Assembly: GCA_038496445.1 (NCBI GenBank)
Contig: JALMLS010000143.1
Coordinates: 434,001 to 498,000, forward strand
From: Trichosphaerium sp. ATCC 40318
Lineage: Eukaryota; Protista; Tubulinea
Direction of reading: 5' to 3'
DNA length: 64,000 nucleotides
Shown one piece after another: positions 19,072 through 26,100 of the stretch (positions are counted from its first letter, which is position 1; every line of letters starts with the position of its first letter). A program made the translations under genes and the position numbers. The notes under the pieces are model-generated. The model worked only from the letters and a program-made list of their open reading frames with translations, did not search any database and was not told where the DNA came from.

Positions 19072-20130
19072 TTAGATTGGTTCTCCTGAATTCCACTTCT
19101 TGTATGCATTACGTATTCTGCCATAACAACACTCGTAGTGGCAAGATAGCTGTCCATTTTCACGCCACTCTTTGTATTCACCATGTATTTCATTGTCGAC
19201 ATAGAAAGTCTTTGTTTCAAGATGTCCATTCTCATACCACTTTTTATACTCACCAATTCTTTTGTCATCAACATACATACACATTTCATCAAGCTGTCCA
19301 TTTTTGTACCAACGCTTAAGCTCACCATTCTTTTTACCGTTAGTAAAGTTACATTGCCAGTTAATTTGACCATTCTTAAACCACCTCTTACAGACACCAT
19401 GCCGTTTATCATCAACAAACATGTGATGTATACTCATTTGACCATCCTTTTCCCATGCCTTGTACTCTCCACTTTTCTTGCCATTGATGTAGACAACATG
19501 TACACATAAAAGACCATTCGTATGCCACTCTTTAAACTCACCATTCTTAACACCATTAGAATAAAAGTAGTGTTGGGAAATTTGACCATCCTCTAACCAA
19601 TGCTTAAACTCTCCATTCCTTTTGTCATCAATATATGCTGCCTGTATATCTATTTGTCCGCTGTTGTACCACACCTTATACTCTCCTTCAAGCCTGCCGT
19701 TCACGTGATAGCAATGCTTCCGCAATTTACCATTAGCGTGCCATGCCTTGTACTCTCCTTCTCGTTTACCATCAAAATAAAAACCATTCGTTTCCATTTG
19801 AGCATTGTAATACCACTTCCAGTATTCCCCTTCTTTCTTGTTGTTGACGTAATTTTGATGCCTTTTTTTAACACCCATATGCCAGTCTTTACACACTCCT
19901 TCAACTTTACCATTTACATAGTCGCAGTGTCTAATGAATGGGATCAGTGAATCCCTATCATTGTATCGTTTCTTCCATTTGCCGTGTTTCTCAAAGTTGC
20001 CATCAAACCTTGATGACATTGCAGTGTACTTTGATAAGAGAGGCCACATGACATACAACCTAAAGTCTAAATCAGTGACACAAAGATGTAGCTCAACAGG
20101 AAGCCGTAATAAACGGCATATCTCATCCAT
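19072..20130 (-). CDS. Intronless F-box-like plus MORN-variant repeat protein (paralog of 10056-10757)
   Basis: LLRLPVELHLCV N-terminus; about 11 repeats of 24 aa GEYKxWxxNGQxxxxxxYxNGKxx; uninterrupted 352-aa ORF. Confidence 0.88.
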   Translation of the reverse strand: MDEICRLLRLPVELHLCVTDLDFRLYVMWPLLSKYTAMSSRFDGNFEKHGKWKKRYNDRDSLIPFIRHCDYVNGKVEGVCKDWHMGVKKRHQNYVNNKKEGEYWKWYYNAQMETNGFYFDGKREGEYKAWHANGKLRKHCYHVNGRLEGEYKVWYNSGQIDIQAAYIDDKRNGEFKHWLEDGQISQHYFYSNGVKNGEFKEWHTNGLLCVHVVYINGKKSGEYKAWEKDGQMSIHHMFVDDKRHGVCKRWFKNGQINWQCNFTNGKKNGELKRWYKNGQLDEMCMYVDDKRIGEYKKWYENGHLETKTFYVDNEIHGEYKEWRENGQLSCHYECCYGRIRNAYKKWNSGEPI

Positions 20131-20985
20131 TTTAGTAATATTTATCTACGTAAATAAATTATTACAATAACTGAAACAAATCTTGTGCTGATCTCAATTT
20201 TGTTTATGCTGGTGAGAGCGGATAGAAAAATACTAACAGCGAATAACGTTTTATTCTTAGGCGGTTAAAAATGGTAAATAAATAAAACGCACGTGATAGA
20301 TTTTTCAGATGTCTAAATGTTAGACCAAGGATCCCTAGTCGTTACACCTACGAAAATAGAATACCACGAGTTTTCTACGTTAGGTCAACGGTTTTAAAAA
20401 AACCATCACTGCTAATTTTTTTTCCATGTTTTGAAAAAGTACCAATTTCTATTGTCAAGGTGTTCTTGGCAGCCATAGTATGCTTTTTAGGTTTTTTCAT
20501 CTCAACAGCCTTGATATTGCTTTGTAAGTTGCAACTTGACTACAGTCGAAAAAAATCAGCTAAATTTGCCAGGAAGCAACGAAGATAATAGCACTATAAA
20601 ATCGAATATATTACCCTCCCAGTTGAGATCAATCTTGATATAAGTAGGTGTCATGACGCCCTTTTTATTCTTGTATGCTTATTCTGCTTGCAGAGCAACC
20701 CTGTTGTTCATCAAGTAATCTAGTGTCTAGGTTGCGTATCTTAGTCTATTTTGCTGACAAAATCAGTATCACGTGCTCTGTTTACAAGTAAAACAACTTC
20801 CAACTACTGTCACGAAATATCGTCATCTCTAACAATAGAATGTGTTGCCTCTCACGTTCATTTTTCAGTTCGGTTTTCTATTCTCAGATTAGTTTACCAC
20901 AAATTACGTGAATACCTTTTTTGTCGAAAATCGTATCGTTATTAGGCAAATACAAAAATAATACTTACAATACAGCAACAATACA

Positions 20986-22836
20986 ATGCAAAATATATCA
21001 GCGGACTCTTTAGCACAAAAAGGCAAAGAATTAAGCCAAACAGAAACAACAGTAACAAAACCTGATGGGAGCCAGCACACAGGTAATATAGCGCCCCGCA
21101 TAGGTTTTGCAAGGCGTTTTAACACTTTTACAGAGAAACGCGGTAAACAAACAGAAAAAGGAAGCGAAACCACGACTTGTACGCTGACGAGTACAGACGC
21201 CTCATAAAACGCTAAAATAAAACATAGATGTAAGAAAAGTAAAGAAAAAGGAGTGGGAAGACGAACCAGACGTGCTCAGTAAGAAACTTAAAAAACTGGA
21301 GGTACAAACAATCAAAAACAATAGCGTTCAGATTCGGAAAACGCTAAAAATACAACATCCTTTTGATCAAAATAATTATTCTCAAACACTCTTAGGCACT
21401 TGCTCATTCGGCTTCCAATATTGTTTTTTACACTGGCGCTGGTGTAAGCACTTCTGCAGGAGTACCGGACTTCAGGGTATGTTGTATTAGGGATTTAGAG
21501 AGACGCTAAAAGTAGCAATAGGGAGACAAGGGACTTAGAAAAAGAGGTCTTCTTGGTTTACGAGAAGAGGATTTAGATAGTACGTTTTAGATTCTGTTTT
21601 TCTGTCTTCTGGCTCACGTGTGTTAGCTACTATGCCAACAATATCTCACGTGATTATTCAACACTTCTTGGACAAGGGTATTGCTAAAGCTATTGTCACC
21701 TCAAACCACGACAACATGCATCGCAAAGCAGGTACACAGAACTTTCAGTAGCAGTCTTTGTTTTCGTTTATTTGGTTTTTTACATTGGTCTGTACTCACT
21801 TGTACTAAGGTGCACCTGATAACAAGCTAGCAGAACTCTTTGGAAATGCGTAAGTGAAGTTTGTTAAAGAGTTACTCATGCTGATACTTTCAGATACATC
21901 GAAAAATGTCTTAAATGTAAAAAAATGTTTCAACGTAAAGTGATTGTTCCTCATCTCGGAAGAACATGTGAGGAGTGCTCTGGTAGATTAGTAAAGACAG
22001 GTAACATTCCTTTTGGTATGTCACAAGTATTAACAAGTAATTATAGGAGTACGCTATGGGCAAGCAACGCCAGAGGAACCGCTTGAGCTAGCTTGTAAGT
22101 TCACAAAAAAAGCTGACTTGGCTATTGTTCTTGGAAGCTCTATGAGAGTACGTCACGTGATTTTTGTCTTTCCCTAAATGAGGGTACAATACTTACCTGT
22201 TTCTTTTGTAGACAGGACCTTTTTGTAACCTACCACCTAAAGCAAAGAAAATGGTTATTGTTAACTTACAACCTACACCTTATGATTCTAAAGCTACCAT
22301 TAAAATTAACGCTCCTTGTGATAAAGTTATGACATACCTCGCAAATACTTTTAAGATAAATCCAACAGAGTTCACATATGAACAAGAGTTCCAGCTCGAG
22401 TACAAAAAGTCTGATGATAACGTAGATTACACTGGTATGTATTTATTGTAGTATATAACTCAAGCTTTGATGGTTTGTTATTAACTATATTTTACAGTTA
22501 AGAGTACAAGGACAAATGAACCTGTCACATGTATAGATGATGTAACGATTGACGGTAGTTACATGCAGGTAAGCTCTATACTTTGGACTTTTCAGGTATT
22601 AATTTTGTTGACAGGAAACACAAAAAAATGATTTGGTGTTAACAAAACCAATGAAAGACTCAATCAACATTGTATTCAATTTTAAAGAGGTATGCCAATA
22701 CAATTAAAGGTTTTCTATAAATCATAAGTATTAATCTCTGTAGGACTATAACGTGGACCCTCTAAAAATGACATTATCTCTTGATAAAAAATCAGATGTT
22801 TTAAAACTCAAGATGACAAAGACTATACAACTGTAA
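20986..22836 (+). CDS. Class IV (SIRT6/7-like) sirtuin with atypical catalytic motifs
   Basis: IVFYTGAGVSTSAGVPDFRG, PTISH, TSNHDNMHRKAG, AELFGN, CLKC...CEEC zinc ribbon, ADLAIVLGSS, IVNLQPTPYD. Confidence 0.88.
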
Positions 22837-23191
22837 TATAGACGCTCCAACAATTCAATTTATACACCAGAAAAATTGTAACTTTTATTGCACTACAAGT
22901 GCCCCATGTGTTAGCTTGGCTGCAAAATAAATAGGCCTAGCAAACAATTGTTTCAGTAATTTTTTTTTTTTTAAATAGTGGGTTGCAAACCAACACATGC
23001 CAGTAAGCTAACTACCTTGACAGCAAAGGAACTTGATAAACTTTAAAAAAAAAGACAAATTTTTTTTATTTTGCTTTTACCATACACGTGTGTCTTTAAT
23101 TCATTTTTTTTTCTTGTTTTGGGGGTTTTTGTTTAACATTCTTTTTTTTTCTTTTTTTTTTGAAAACAAGCGGTTTTTTTTTGGATTTGTT

Positions 23192-26100
23192 TTATATTTT
23201 AAAGTCTACCAAGTCCCATATTTTATGCCACAGTGTAGTTAACTTCTTCTCTGGAGGTGGATCATATGCTTTAAGCTTATGATCAACACCATTAGAGGTA
23301 GTACCAGATACTTTTGTCTTCAATGTTTGTTCAGGTGATGCTGCCTTGTATGAGTATTTTTTAGTCAATGCAACCTCTTCTGGTTCATCTGTTTGGTACT
23401 CTTCTGAAATAATACGATCCTTATAATCCATTCTACAAAAGATTATGAGTTACAGCTTACCAGACAACAAAAATTAAAAACAAACAAATGAATGGCGTAA
23501 AAAAGGTTTTTTTTTTCTTTGTTGAAAATCAAAAATGATTCATGTTCACGTACTCTTTGAACATTTTGGTCATTACTTCAAGTACCAAGTGTCTTAGATG
23601 AGAACGTGTTTCACGAAGCTCAGACATAATACGCCATGCGGTATTAAGAGTTAGAAGAGTGGACATTGTCTTTAGTACAAAGCTTCCTTCTTCAAAAGCA
23701 CGAACACTGTAAAAAAATAAGCGTCAGAGGGATAAAAACAACTAGGTCGTACCCAAAGTAAGATACGAAAGGCAAAGAGCAGAAGAAACCGACACCAACG
23801 AAGAAACCGTAGAAATACATAATAATGACAGTGTAAAGTGCGTAGAGCGAAGGTACAACAACCAATCCAATTACAAGCTAAGATGAAGTGTGAGTTGAGG
23901 TTGTTTAATTATTTGTAATAATAAAGAACCTTTTGAGATGCTAATACATCAAGACCCTTTATCTTTACTGTTGACTTGTTCAATGCTTCAATTTGCTACA
24001 AACAAAGAGTCAGAAAAGTTACGCAAAATAGTAGCCAACTGTGTTGGTTTGTGGCTAAAATTTTGATGGCACGTGTGTTCGATGGTACGGTTATAAAGAT
24101 ACTCAAAAAAGATATTCGAGTATATTTGGCCGTATTTCTCTCTTGTTAAGTTTAAACAAGCCACAAAATGATGACGTCATCATTGACGCTTGTTGAAGGA
24201 CAAAACAAAAGAAATGCCAACCATGTCGCGGGTTTTTTTACCTTTTTCTTTGAGAGGTAACGGACGATTAATCCAGCAGGTGCGTTGATTAGGATAGAAG
24301 GGAATGATAGTATAGCGGCTAATACAACCAAAATAAATCTTGTTACAGTCAACTTCATGAAAGTAAAAATGCCAATCTCTGGGTAAGCAACCTTAGAAAA
24401 AAAAGTTAGTAGAGCCAGAAAAAAAATCATTGTCTTGGACACCACGTGTTCAAGTGATAAAAACCACGCACGTGATGGTCTGTAAGTCCATATCTCTTTA
24501 GTTTACTGATGTAATCTCTAATTTCTTTGATAGGCTCTTGGAACTCTGGTTTATCGTTGAAACGCTTCCATCCCTCTGAAAGAAAAAAAGTTAAGAAAAA
24601 GTTGACAAAAAAAAACAAACTTTTCTCTTTAATGACTGTACCTGATAGACGTCTACGTAATGCCATAAATTCTTTTGGAGATAGTACGTAGTTTACAGGT
24701 TGGTATAGACGTCTTAGAATGTGTACGACTTCGAAAGATTCGAAGTCAGGCATGTTTACTGTTACCTATAAAAAAAAGTAAGAAAAAAAAATGTAACGGT
24801 CAATAAGTGATAGTTGTTTTTATGATACCACTGAGATTTTGAAAAATAGAACTGCGGTATGGGTGATGGTATTAAATATACGTACCTTTTCCAAGCCTTC
24901 CTTGATTGATGAAAGAAATTCATCGCCTGTAATAAAGTGTCAAATGTTGGTATCGAAAAGTTTAATTAATTTGAGCATCGTACCCGCTTTGTACTTATTC
25001 GCTGATACACCTGTTTTATATAGATCGAGTAGGTGTGGTGGTATGCTCAGTGGAGTACCAAACTCTACGACTACACGACCGCTTAAAGACATGTGAGAAG
25101 ACAACACATAAATTGTGAACAGATACCAAATCTTTAAAATTAACGCTTTTTGAATGCGTACCGAAATTTGTGGCCTTTAAAGTACGTTAATCCCACTGGC
25201 ACAATACGTACATTTGTATTGTAGTTAACAGCAGCATCCTAAACTTTCGATTAAAACAGGAATAACGGAGGAAAAAAACGAATCAAACAAAAAAGTTTCA
25301 CGTCAACTTTAAACCAAAAATAAAATTTCGCGAAATAGCGTACAAAAGCTATCCTAGATACACCGGCTTTGAAAGGAAGTAATTCTGGTCTATCATGGGA
25401 CCCACCCTCAGGGAATATACCGACACTAGAGACAAAAAAAAATAAGAAAAAAGAAGAAAAAAAGACGTTGTGAAAAAAACAAAAAATCAATCAATTTTCA
25501 TTTTTTGCGTTATAGCGTTTATCACGTGCCAGTGACCTTCTTTCAAACGATTACAAACTTCTTCAAAAGTTTTTGAGTGGTCAAGTTTAGGGTACACCTA
25601 CAAGTACAACGTGAGTTTCGTATGAACACGTCAACATGTGTTAAAAAACGAAAAAAAAACTTCAAACAAAAAGGATTGCTAACAGCACCTTAAACGCGAA
25701 ATTAGCCATTTCAGTATCCCAGGTACCCTTAATAACGATCTCTGTATCAGATAAGACCTATTGTAACATTAGCAAACAAGAAATAACGCCCAACCAACAA
25801 TTTCGAGCAAAAAAAAAAAACCCACAAAAACACCTCATACCTCTACCACACGTATTGGTTTGAATGATCCTTTGTAATTTTTATCGTTTTTCGGTTTTGT
25901 AGGACAGATTGCATCGCCAACGTTTACTTGCTTCAAAAACTGTGTGCCAGTACCTGTTACCTTTACTCCTGATACCTCAATAGTACCAACGCCCTTGACA
26001 AAAAGTGTAAACGTAAATAGAGTTGAGTTTTTTTCTTTTTAGTACAGCTTTTGCGACGTCTTTAGGCCTCGTTACTGGTATACTGTTTACTGCGCGAGCA

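Follow-up and report, generated by a model that had tools for sequence, protein, structure and literature searches.

We analysed a 64,000-nt stretch of the genome of Trichosphaerium sp. ATCC 40318 (contig JALMLS010000143.1, positions 434,001-498,000 of the forward strand; hereafter the window), whose DNA is 37% G+C and of an intron-bearing eukaryotic kind with short GT..AG introns, and found in it a gene for a SIRT6-like sirtuin in which the catalytic histidine is replaced by phenylalanine (Table 1). An RNA-derived contig (L001; MMETSP/JGI 3300016894, 1319 nt) maps onto this gene in 13 blocks with 100% identity, and all 12 of the introns between these blocks (12/12) are of the GT..AG type, with lengths of 44-94 nt. 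The spliced coding sequence translates exactly into a database protein of 389 aa (P0001), which according to its source record is the open reading frame of an MMETSP transcript and which was found with exon 10 as the query (window 22212-22433), being 100% identical there. The mapping of L001 in 13 identical blocks and the exact translation therefore establish that the gene is transcribed and spliced. All full-length comparisons used P0001 as the query, and residue numbers below refer to it unless another protein is named. The final 16 nt of the RNA-derived contig (L001:1304-1319) match window 23306-23321, 368 nt past the end of the gene and across a junction without GT/AG, which is probably a chimeric join with the transcript of a convergent neighbour or else an artefact of assembly.

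Table 1. The sirtuin gene of the window and the features of its product; positions count from the first letter of the window, and 'clade' denotes the group of His-less relatives described in the text
Feature	Window positions	Strand	Evidence or remark
His-less SIRT6-like gene, whole transcription unit	20954..22937	+	13 exons; transcript mapping
Start codon (ATG)	20986	+	
Stop codon	22834-22836	+	
AATAAA	near 22927	+	
Exons 1-4	20954-21082, 21134-21178, 21228-21301, 21396-21476	+	
Exons 5-8	21522-21579, 21627-21731, 21810-21849, 21894-22000	+	
Exons 9-11	22047-22147, 22212-22434, 22498-22568	+	
Exons 12-13	22615-22689, 22744-22937	+	
SIR2 core, residues 56-283	21251..22352	+	Exons 3-10; Pfam SIR2, SIRT6 match, AlphaFold2 model
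GAGVS, Rossmann NAD-phosphate motif	21435..21449	+	Kept; Ser90 invariant in clade and canonical class IV
PDFRG	21465-21476 and 21522-21524	+	Present, split over an intron
TSNHD, replaces (S/T)QNxD	21698..21712	+	Ser144 for SIRT6 Q113; His146 (21707-21709) for V115
ELFGN, replaces ELHGN	21833..21847	+	Phe164 (TTT, 21839-21841) for the catalytic His, SIRT6 H133
Zn module, C172, C175, C192, C195	21907..21978	+	Four cysteines (21907, 21916, 21967, 21976), clade-invariant
K-T-G-V-R-Y-G, replaces SIRT6 substrate-loop D-T-I-L-D-W-E	21994..22060	+	Spans exon 8/9 junction, intron 22001-22046
LGSS	22130-22141	+	Present
VNLQPT	22260-22277	+	Present
C-terminal beta-sandwich, YEATS-like fold, residues 284-389	22353..22833	+	Exons 10-13; AlphaFold2, Foldseek

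A first-pass annotation, made from the letters of the window alone, had described ELFGN with a Phe codon where sirtuins have ELHG, TSNHD in the place of TQNxD, and an otherwise intact set of sirtuin motifs, and its description holds throughout. Both altered motifs are read in the window (TSNHD in exon 6 and ELFGN in exon 7), and GAGVS, PDFRG, the four Zn cysteines, LGSS and VNLQPT could all be located. The alignment with human SIRT6 is unambiguous at both altered motifs (KLAELFGN against KLAELHGN, and TSNHD against SQNVD), so that S144 is paired with Q113, N145 with N114, H146 with V115, D147 with D116 and F164 with H133. Further along, in the substrate loop, K201 is paired with D183, G203 with I185, R205 (codon 22052-22054) with D187 and Y206 with W188. 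The P, D, F and R of PDFRG and the N and Q of VNLQ are retained in P0001; the Pro and Trp of the class IV motif GP.GVW (SIRT6 W71) are gone from the gene product, which reads GLR there. That the Phe codon merely reflects a sequencing or assembly error can practically be dismissed: the identical TTT is present in the RNA-derived contig, Phe164 is not a one-base error because two base changes separate TTT from a His codon (CAY), and every member of the clade described below has Phe at this position. Within the substrate loop there is also an alternative in-frame GT donor, 15 nt downstream of the one used by the transcript (22016 versus 22001; window 22001-22017), which would add five residues of the NIPFG type right before R205; the sole transcript at hand is spliced at the upstream donor (22001).

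The protein matches the Pfam SIR2 family (PF02146) with 77 bits (cut-off 24; E-value 2.2e-21), and its best matches among solved structures are human SIRT6 (E-value 6.7e-41 over residues 56-280), SIRT7 (6.9e-34) and Sir2Tm (3e-28). When the exons are scanned one by one, the Pfam SIR2 matches are sub-threshold, with PDB matches to SIRT6/SIRT7 and Sir2Tm. Based on an alignment of 40 family sequences, an AlphaFold2 model (predicted local distance difference test, pLDDT, 86.5; predicted template modelling score 0.81) superposes best on SIRT6, with a root-mean-square deviation (rmsd) of 2.3 Å and 36% identity, and can also be superposed on Sir2Tm; the pLDDT is about 56 at residues 101-110, the place of the ordered cofactor helix of SIRT6. 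P0001 has both the sequence profile and the Rossmann/Zn-module fold of the sirtuin superfamily, and has Phe164 where the superfamily has its catalytic His. It is a class IV (SIRT6-like) sirtuin-fold protein, with SIRT6/7 as its nearest relatives and with homologues outside its own clade that are all of the SIRT6/SRT1 type, where 'class IV' spans positions inside the class and beside it, the tree given below being unrooted and drawn without class I-III sirtuins.

Human SIRT6 (e.g. PDB 3K35, 3PKI, 3ZG6 and 8G57) is the nearest solved relative in both sequence and fold. The two proteins have in common GAGxS, PDFRG, the N and D of QNxD, the HG(N) spacing, the four Zn cysteines, the equivalents of R150/R164, GxS and VNLQxT. 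Aside from the substitutions already listed, P0001 differs from SIRT6 in that it is without the 8-residue loop T167-L174 between the third and fourth Zn cysteines, and in that it ends in a folded beta-sandwich, in contrast to the disordered tail of the human protein.

We fetched 198 homologous proteins, of which 134 with at least 270 aa carry one of two motif types. The first-pass annotation had proposed asking whether SNHD and ELFG co-occur among homologues, and the answer is unequivocal: all proteins with [TS]SNHD have x-x-F-G (49/49), all those with [ST][QT]NxD have H-G (85/85), and there are no mixed cases, which makes 49/49 against 0/85 for the pair of changes. Residues invariant in all 49 are S144, N145, H146, D147, F164, G165, E170, the four Zn cysteines, R181, P186, R190, R205, P211, G232 and T258, with which a 40-row subset agrees. 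A maximum likelihood tree was computed from class IV cores, 33 of the SNHD/F and 69 of the His type. In it, a single branch separates all SNHD/F rows from the others, with a support of 100 in the Shimodaira-Hasegawa-like approximate likelihood-ratio test (SH-aLRT), or 99 once the nine discriminating columns are removed. Since these rows make up a single, well-supported branch (hereafter the SNHD/F clade), we conclude that the SNHD...F-G trait arose once. The co-occurrence is therefore one event, and the evidence for function lies in the long retention of the trait, not in repeated co-evolution.

Members of the clade, only 37-47% identical to P0001, include Capsaspora owczarzaki (CAOG_07119) of the Filasterea, Ancoracysta twista of the Provora, Lapot gusevi of the Rhizaria, and Luapeleamoeba hula and Clydonella of the Amoebozoa, together with further sequences from metagenomic eukaryotes. 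Their database names, assigned automatically, are 'SIR2 family deacetylase', 'mono-ADP-ribosyltransferase sirtuin 6' and 'hypothetical protein'. On one 1.07-Mb metagenome contig (L007:1849-4080) the gene for the His-less sirtuin is intronless and directly follows a CSN5/JAB gene of the same orientation.

The SNHD...F-G clade is ancient and maintained under purifying selection, and is not a decaying copy. In a close pair of transcripts from the family (P0084 and P0098), we obtained 0.13 nonsynonymous (dN) and 0.73 synonymous (dS) substitutions per site and a dN/dS of 0.18, a figure that describes this family pair and not the window gene, which is saturated at synonymous sites in comparison with all of the relatives at hand. 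The dN/dS check suggested in the first-pass annotation has thus been carried through for the family and was not informative for the Trichosphaerium gene itself. The same annotation had argued for a maintained state, with altered chemistry or as an NAD-sensing pseudoenzyme, rather than decay, an argument that an unexpressed and neutrally evolving gene would have undone; the spliced transcript, the invariance across a deep eukaryotic clade and the dN/dS of the family pair all bear it out. We see very little room for the opposite account, in which the gene is a young, decaying duplicate or pseudogene and a redundant SIRT6 paralogue has picked up the change from His to Phe as one neutral mutation among several. 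The 389-codon reading frame is intact across 12 canonical introns, its spliced transcript exists, the family dN/dS is low, the same substitutions are invariant in relatives of only 40-47% identity from four eukaryotic supergroups, and the split that sets the clade apart is deep. That P0001 is a maintained member of a His-less class IV clade is, in our judgement, close to certain.

The pair used for dN/dS comes from a subclade (P0004, P0079, P0083, P0084, P0087, P0095 and P0098; loci L002-L005) in which the Pro, Asp and Arg of PDFRG have also been lost. These proteins read GIGTF(Q/T)GENAMG in place of GIPDFRG and keep SNHD, FG and R205.

When the 33 clade rows of the core alignment are compared column by column with the 69 His-type class IV rows, at least five pocket positions beyond the two motifs prove to be altered throughout the clade. 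The residues fixed in the clade are S144 (canonical Q 75%, T 25%), H146 (V/C/T/I), F164 (H 100%, 69/69 rows), K201 (D 88%), G203 (I 70%), R205 (N/D, never R) and F240 (A 83%, Ala/Ser). The RGP.GVW motif of the canonical rows (Pro in 64/69, Trp in 67/69) has lost its Trp in the whole clade (0/33). Several residues that contact NAD+ (nicotinamide adenine dinucleotide) are relaxed, with P96 in 55% of the clade, D97 in 70%, R99 in 70%, N254 in 61% and Q256 in 67%; of the 69 canonical rows, 67-69 keep the D, R, N and Q, and 65 keep the Pro. The clade accordingly differs from class IV as usually defined, in that it has neither the RGP.G(V/I)WT cofactor helix nor an invariant D and R of PDFRG and N and Q of VNLQ. 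Both groups share GAGxS, N145, D147, H150, G165-N166, the Zn site, GxS and T258. We also found that about one quarter of the His-keeping class IV homologues (e.g. P0112-P0118, P0125, P0132 and P0136) have STNxD, with Thr for Gln, often in proteins with zf-UBP or CAP-C fusions; the Gln of QNxD is thus absent even from some class IV enzymes that are presumably active.

The C-terminal domain is modelled as a seven-strand beta-sandwich (pLDDT 95) that belongs by fold with the YEATS domains (Yaf9, GAS41, ENL and AF9; PF03366), in contrast to its sequence, which gives no such match. Foldseek against the PDB returns YEATS structures for all of the top 50, and in VIA-align the top 8 are eight different YEATS proteins (Z 9.7-7.8, rmsd 2.2-2.7 Å over about 95 of 106 residues). 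Yaf9 leads them with Z 9.7 (rmsd 2.5 Å, 97 residues), and the first hit of another fold reaches Z 6.5. A Pfam scan of P0001 at E-values up to 1 leaves the domain without any match, YEATS included, and a profile of the domain against PDB sequences retrieves noise only (FKBP, E-value about 0.7). Aligned with a true YEATS domain by hhalign, it reaches 14%, and the alignment ends ahead of the cage motif; E318 is its only residue invariant in the clade, and the acyl-lysine cage motifs of YEATS domains (LH.SF and GWG.F) appear to have no conserved counterpart in it.

The same kind of domain is found in class IV proteins that keep the catalytic His. In hhalign comparisons the clade domain matches the C-terminal domains of fungal and amoebal His-type class IV proteins at 94.5% (E-value 8e-8) and those of plant SRT1 at 88.6%, and the latter two match each other at 96%. 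In one His-type relative (P0074), Pfam recognises a bona fide YEATS domain at the corresponding position (E-value 4.8e-22), to which the fungal/amoebal type aligns at 72%. A structural search of the ESM Atlas with the clade domain gives a plant SIR2 cluster as the best match (template modelling score 0.79), followed by YEATS clusters. Plant SRT1 and the fungal and amoebal SIRT6-like proteins thus share the two-domain architecture and a homologous C-terminal domain with the clade; unlike it, they keep the catalytic His, the Gln or Thr, the Trp and every NAD contact, and the branch with SH-aLRT 100 separates them from it. Because the C-terminal domains are homologous, the architecture of a sirtuin with a degenerate YEATS-like domain was inherited, and the novelty of the clade lies in its catalytic chamber, not in its C-terminal domain. 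This pattern suggests that SIRT6 and YEATS were fused in an ancestor and that the reader cage degenerated later. The His-type proteins with these long C-terminal extensions, homologous to each other and to the clade domain, include P0131, P0129, P0074 and their relatives.

The immediate upstream neighbour of the sirtuin gene is an intronless reading frame of 352 aa with MORN repeats (window 19072-20130, minus strand), which is read in the opposite direction and lies in a region that is otherwise intron-dense.

According to the textbook mechanism of sirtuins, neither the cleavage of nicotinamide nor the formation of the O-alkylamidate strictly requires the His, whereas the step that follows, the activation of the 2'-OH, does. 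Canonical deacylation, with deprotonation of the ribose 2'/3'-OH by the His and attack of this hydroxyl on the O-alkylamidate, would not be available to the SNHD/F clade. Its chamber for acyl-lysine and nicotinamide ribose would instead be rebuilt as an aromatic, basic pocket of F164, F240, Y/M/F206, H146 and G203, with K201 and R205 for two Asp, and the residues that hold and strain NAD+ (D97, R99, N254, Q256 and the GP.GVW helix) would be dispensable in parts of the clade. We therefore put forward, at slightly less than an even chance, that these proteins are repurposed, non-deacylating, non-catalytic binding modules. The sirtuin fold would then act mainly by binding, as a reader, adaptor or sensor and not as a turnover deacylase, and its putative ligand, a modified side chain and/or a nucleotide, would be held in the old cleft by N145, H146, D147, F164 and R205. 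The loss of NAD contacts in parts of the clade while the signature stays suggests that the conserved function is independent of canonical NAD+ activation, and it is because these contact residues are relaxed that we lean slightly to the non-catalytic side.

Several observations weigh against a pure binding role. Dead catalytic sites normally drift, and the three substituted positions of the clade are more invariant than is usual for such sites. N145, D147, the Ser of GAGxS and GSS are invariant as well, and residues of the N145/D147 type hold nicotinamide and support its cleavage. P0001 itself may well bind NAD+ productively, to judge from its own P, D, F, R, N and Q, all of which are kept. 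A sirtuin fold without the His can also be a robust enzyme, as in SirTM (PMC4518038), and the title of PDB entry 2H59 describes the H116A mutant of Sir2Tm in complex with deacetylated peptide and 3'-O-acetyl-ADP-ribose.

These points also speak for an enzyme that is still NAD+-dependent and has relocated its base, which we regard as the main rival and as somewhat less likely than the binding module. His146 would serve as the base or as a ribose anchor, Ser144, two residues before it, would give its imidazole room to take over the site of the lost Gln/His contacts with the nicotinamide ribose, and Phe164 would form a hydrophobic floor; slow deacylation, ADP-ribosyl transfer or NAD+ hydrolysis are the activities proposed. 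Such a move has a parallel in the relocated catalytic Lys of WNK kinases, and in SIRT3 and Sir2Tm structures the catalytic His lines the same acyl-lysine/ribose chamber as the x position of QNxD. S144, H146 and F164 have also arisen together on one branch, and PDFRG and VNLQ are intact in P0001. Telling against this enzyme, R99, D97, N254 or Q256 is missing in about 30-40% of the clade, and members without these NAD contacts nevertheless retain the signature and evolve under purifying selection; throughout the clade, moreover, the GP.GVW cofactor helix of class IV has degenerated. Were His146 a relocated catalytic residue after all, which we hold to be a minority prospect, it would be the first natural migration of a catalytic residue in the sirtuin fold, and the charge reversal from Asp to Lys/Arg in the substrate loop might possibly bring with it a new substrate class.

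SirTM offers the closest precedent for the absence of the His. These macrodomain-linked, ADP-ribosylating sirtuins of class M are without the catalytic His, have a conserved Arg elsewhere in the site and show no deacylase activity, and according to Rack et al. (2015) the His is present in all the described sirtuin classes other than SirTM (PMC4518038). At the His position SirTM has Gln and the clade has Phe, and SirTM proteins are bacterial or fungal and linked to macrodomains and GcvH-L, unlike the class IV proteins of the clade. Pfam detects no macrodomain in P0001, the neighbouring genes of the window not having been searched for one. A relation to SirTM or to the SIR2 NADases of bacterial defence was considered and rejected by sequence, fold and tree. 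The same position has been substituted in the engineered mutants H116A and H116Y of Sir2Tm (the latter, by the title of PDB 2H4H, in complex with peptide and NAD) and H133Y of SIRT6, but these are single laboratory mutations; the change in the clade is natural and ancient and is accompanied by at least seven other fixed changes of the pocket.

Gold and Sinclair (2022) named the additional class IV families SIR8 and SIR9 and made no mention of His loss or of Capsaspora, and Grau-Bove et al. treat only the origins of SIRT6/7. We searched the literature for pseudo-sirtuins and inactive sirtuins, for class IV sirtuins without the His and for the locus tag of the Capsaspora gene, with no relevant result, and a feature search of the ESM Atlas gave canonical fungal and plant SIR2 clusters only. 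Within the literature searched, the SNHD/F clade is undescribed.

Deacylating sirtuins are regarded as sharing the catalytic His universally, and here a whole SIRT6-like clade, with members in the Amoebozoa, Rhizaria and Provora and in Capsaspora, a close unicellular relative of animals, has Phe in its place together with a new, fixed His in the QNxD motif. As a by-product of the comparison, plant SRT1 and many SIRT6-like proteins of protists and fungi appear to have a degenerate domain of the YEATS type as their C-terminal extension. As enzymes, the members of the clade would represent a second design of the sirtuin active site. As non-enzymes, they would be, as far as the literature searched goes, the first natural family of sirtuin pseudoenzymes to be described, and a ligand could be sought for their conserved pocket. 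Given that Capsaspora can be cultured and that the proteins are small, the question is directly testable.

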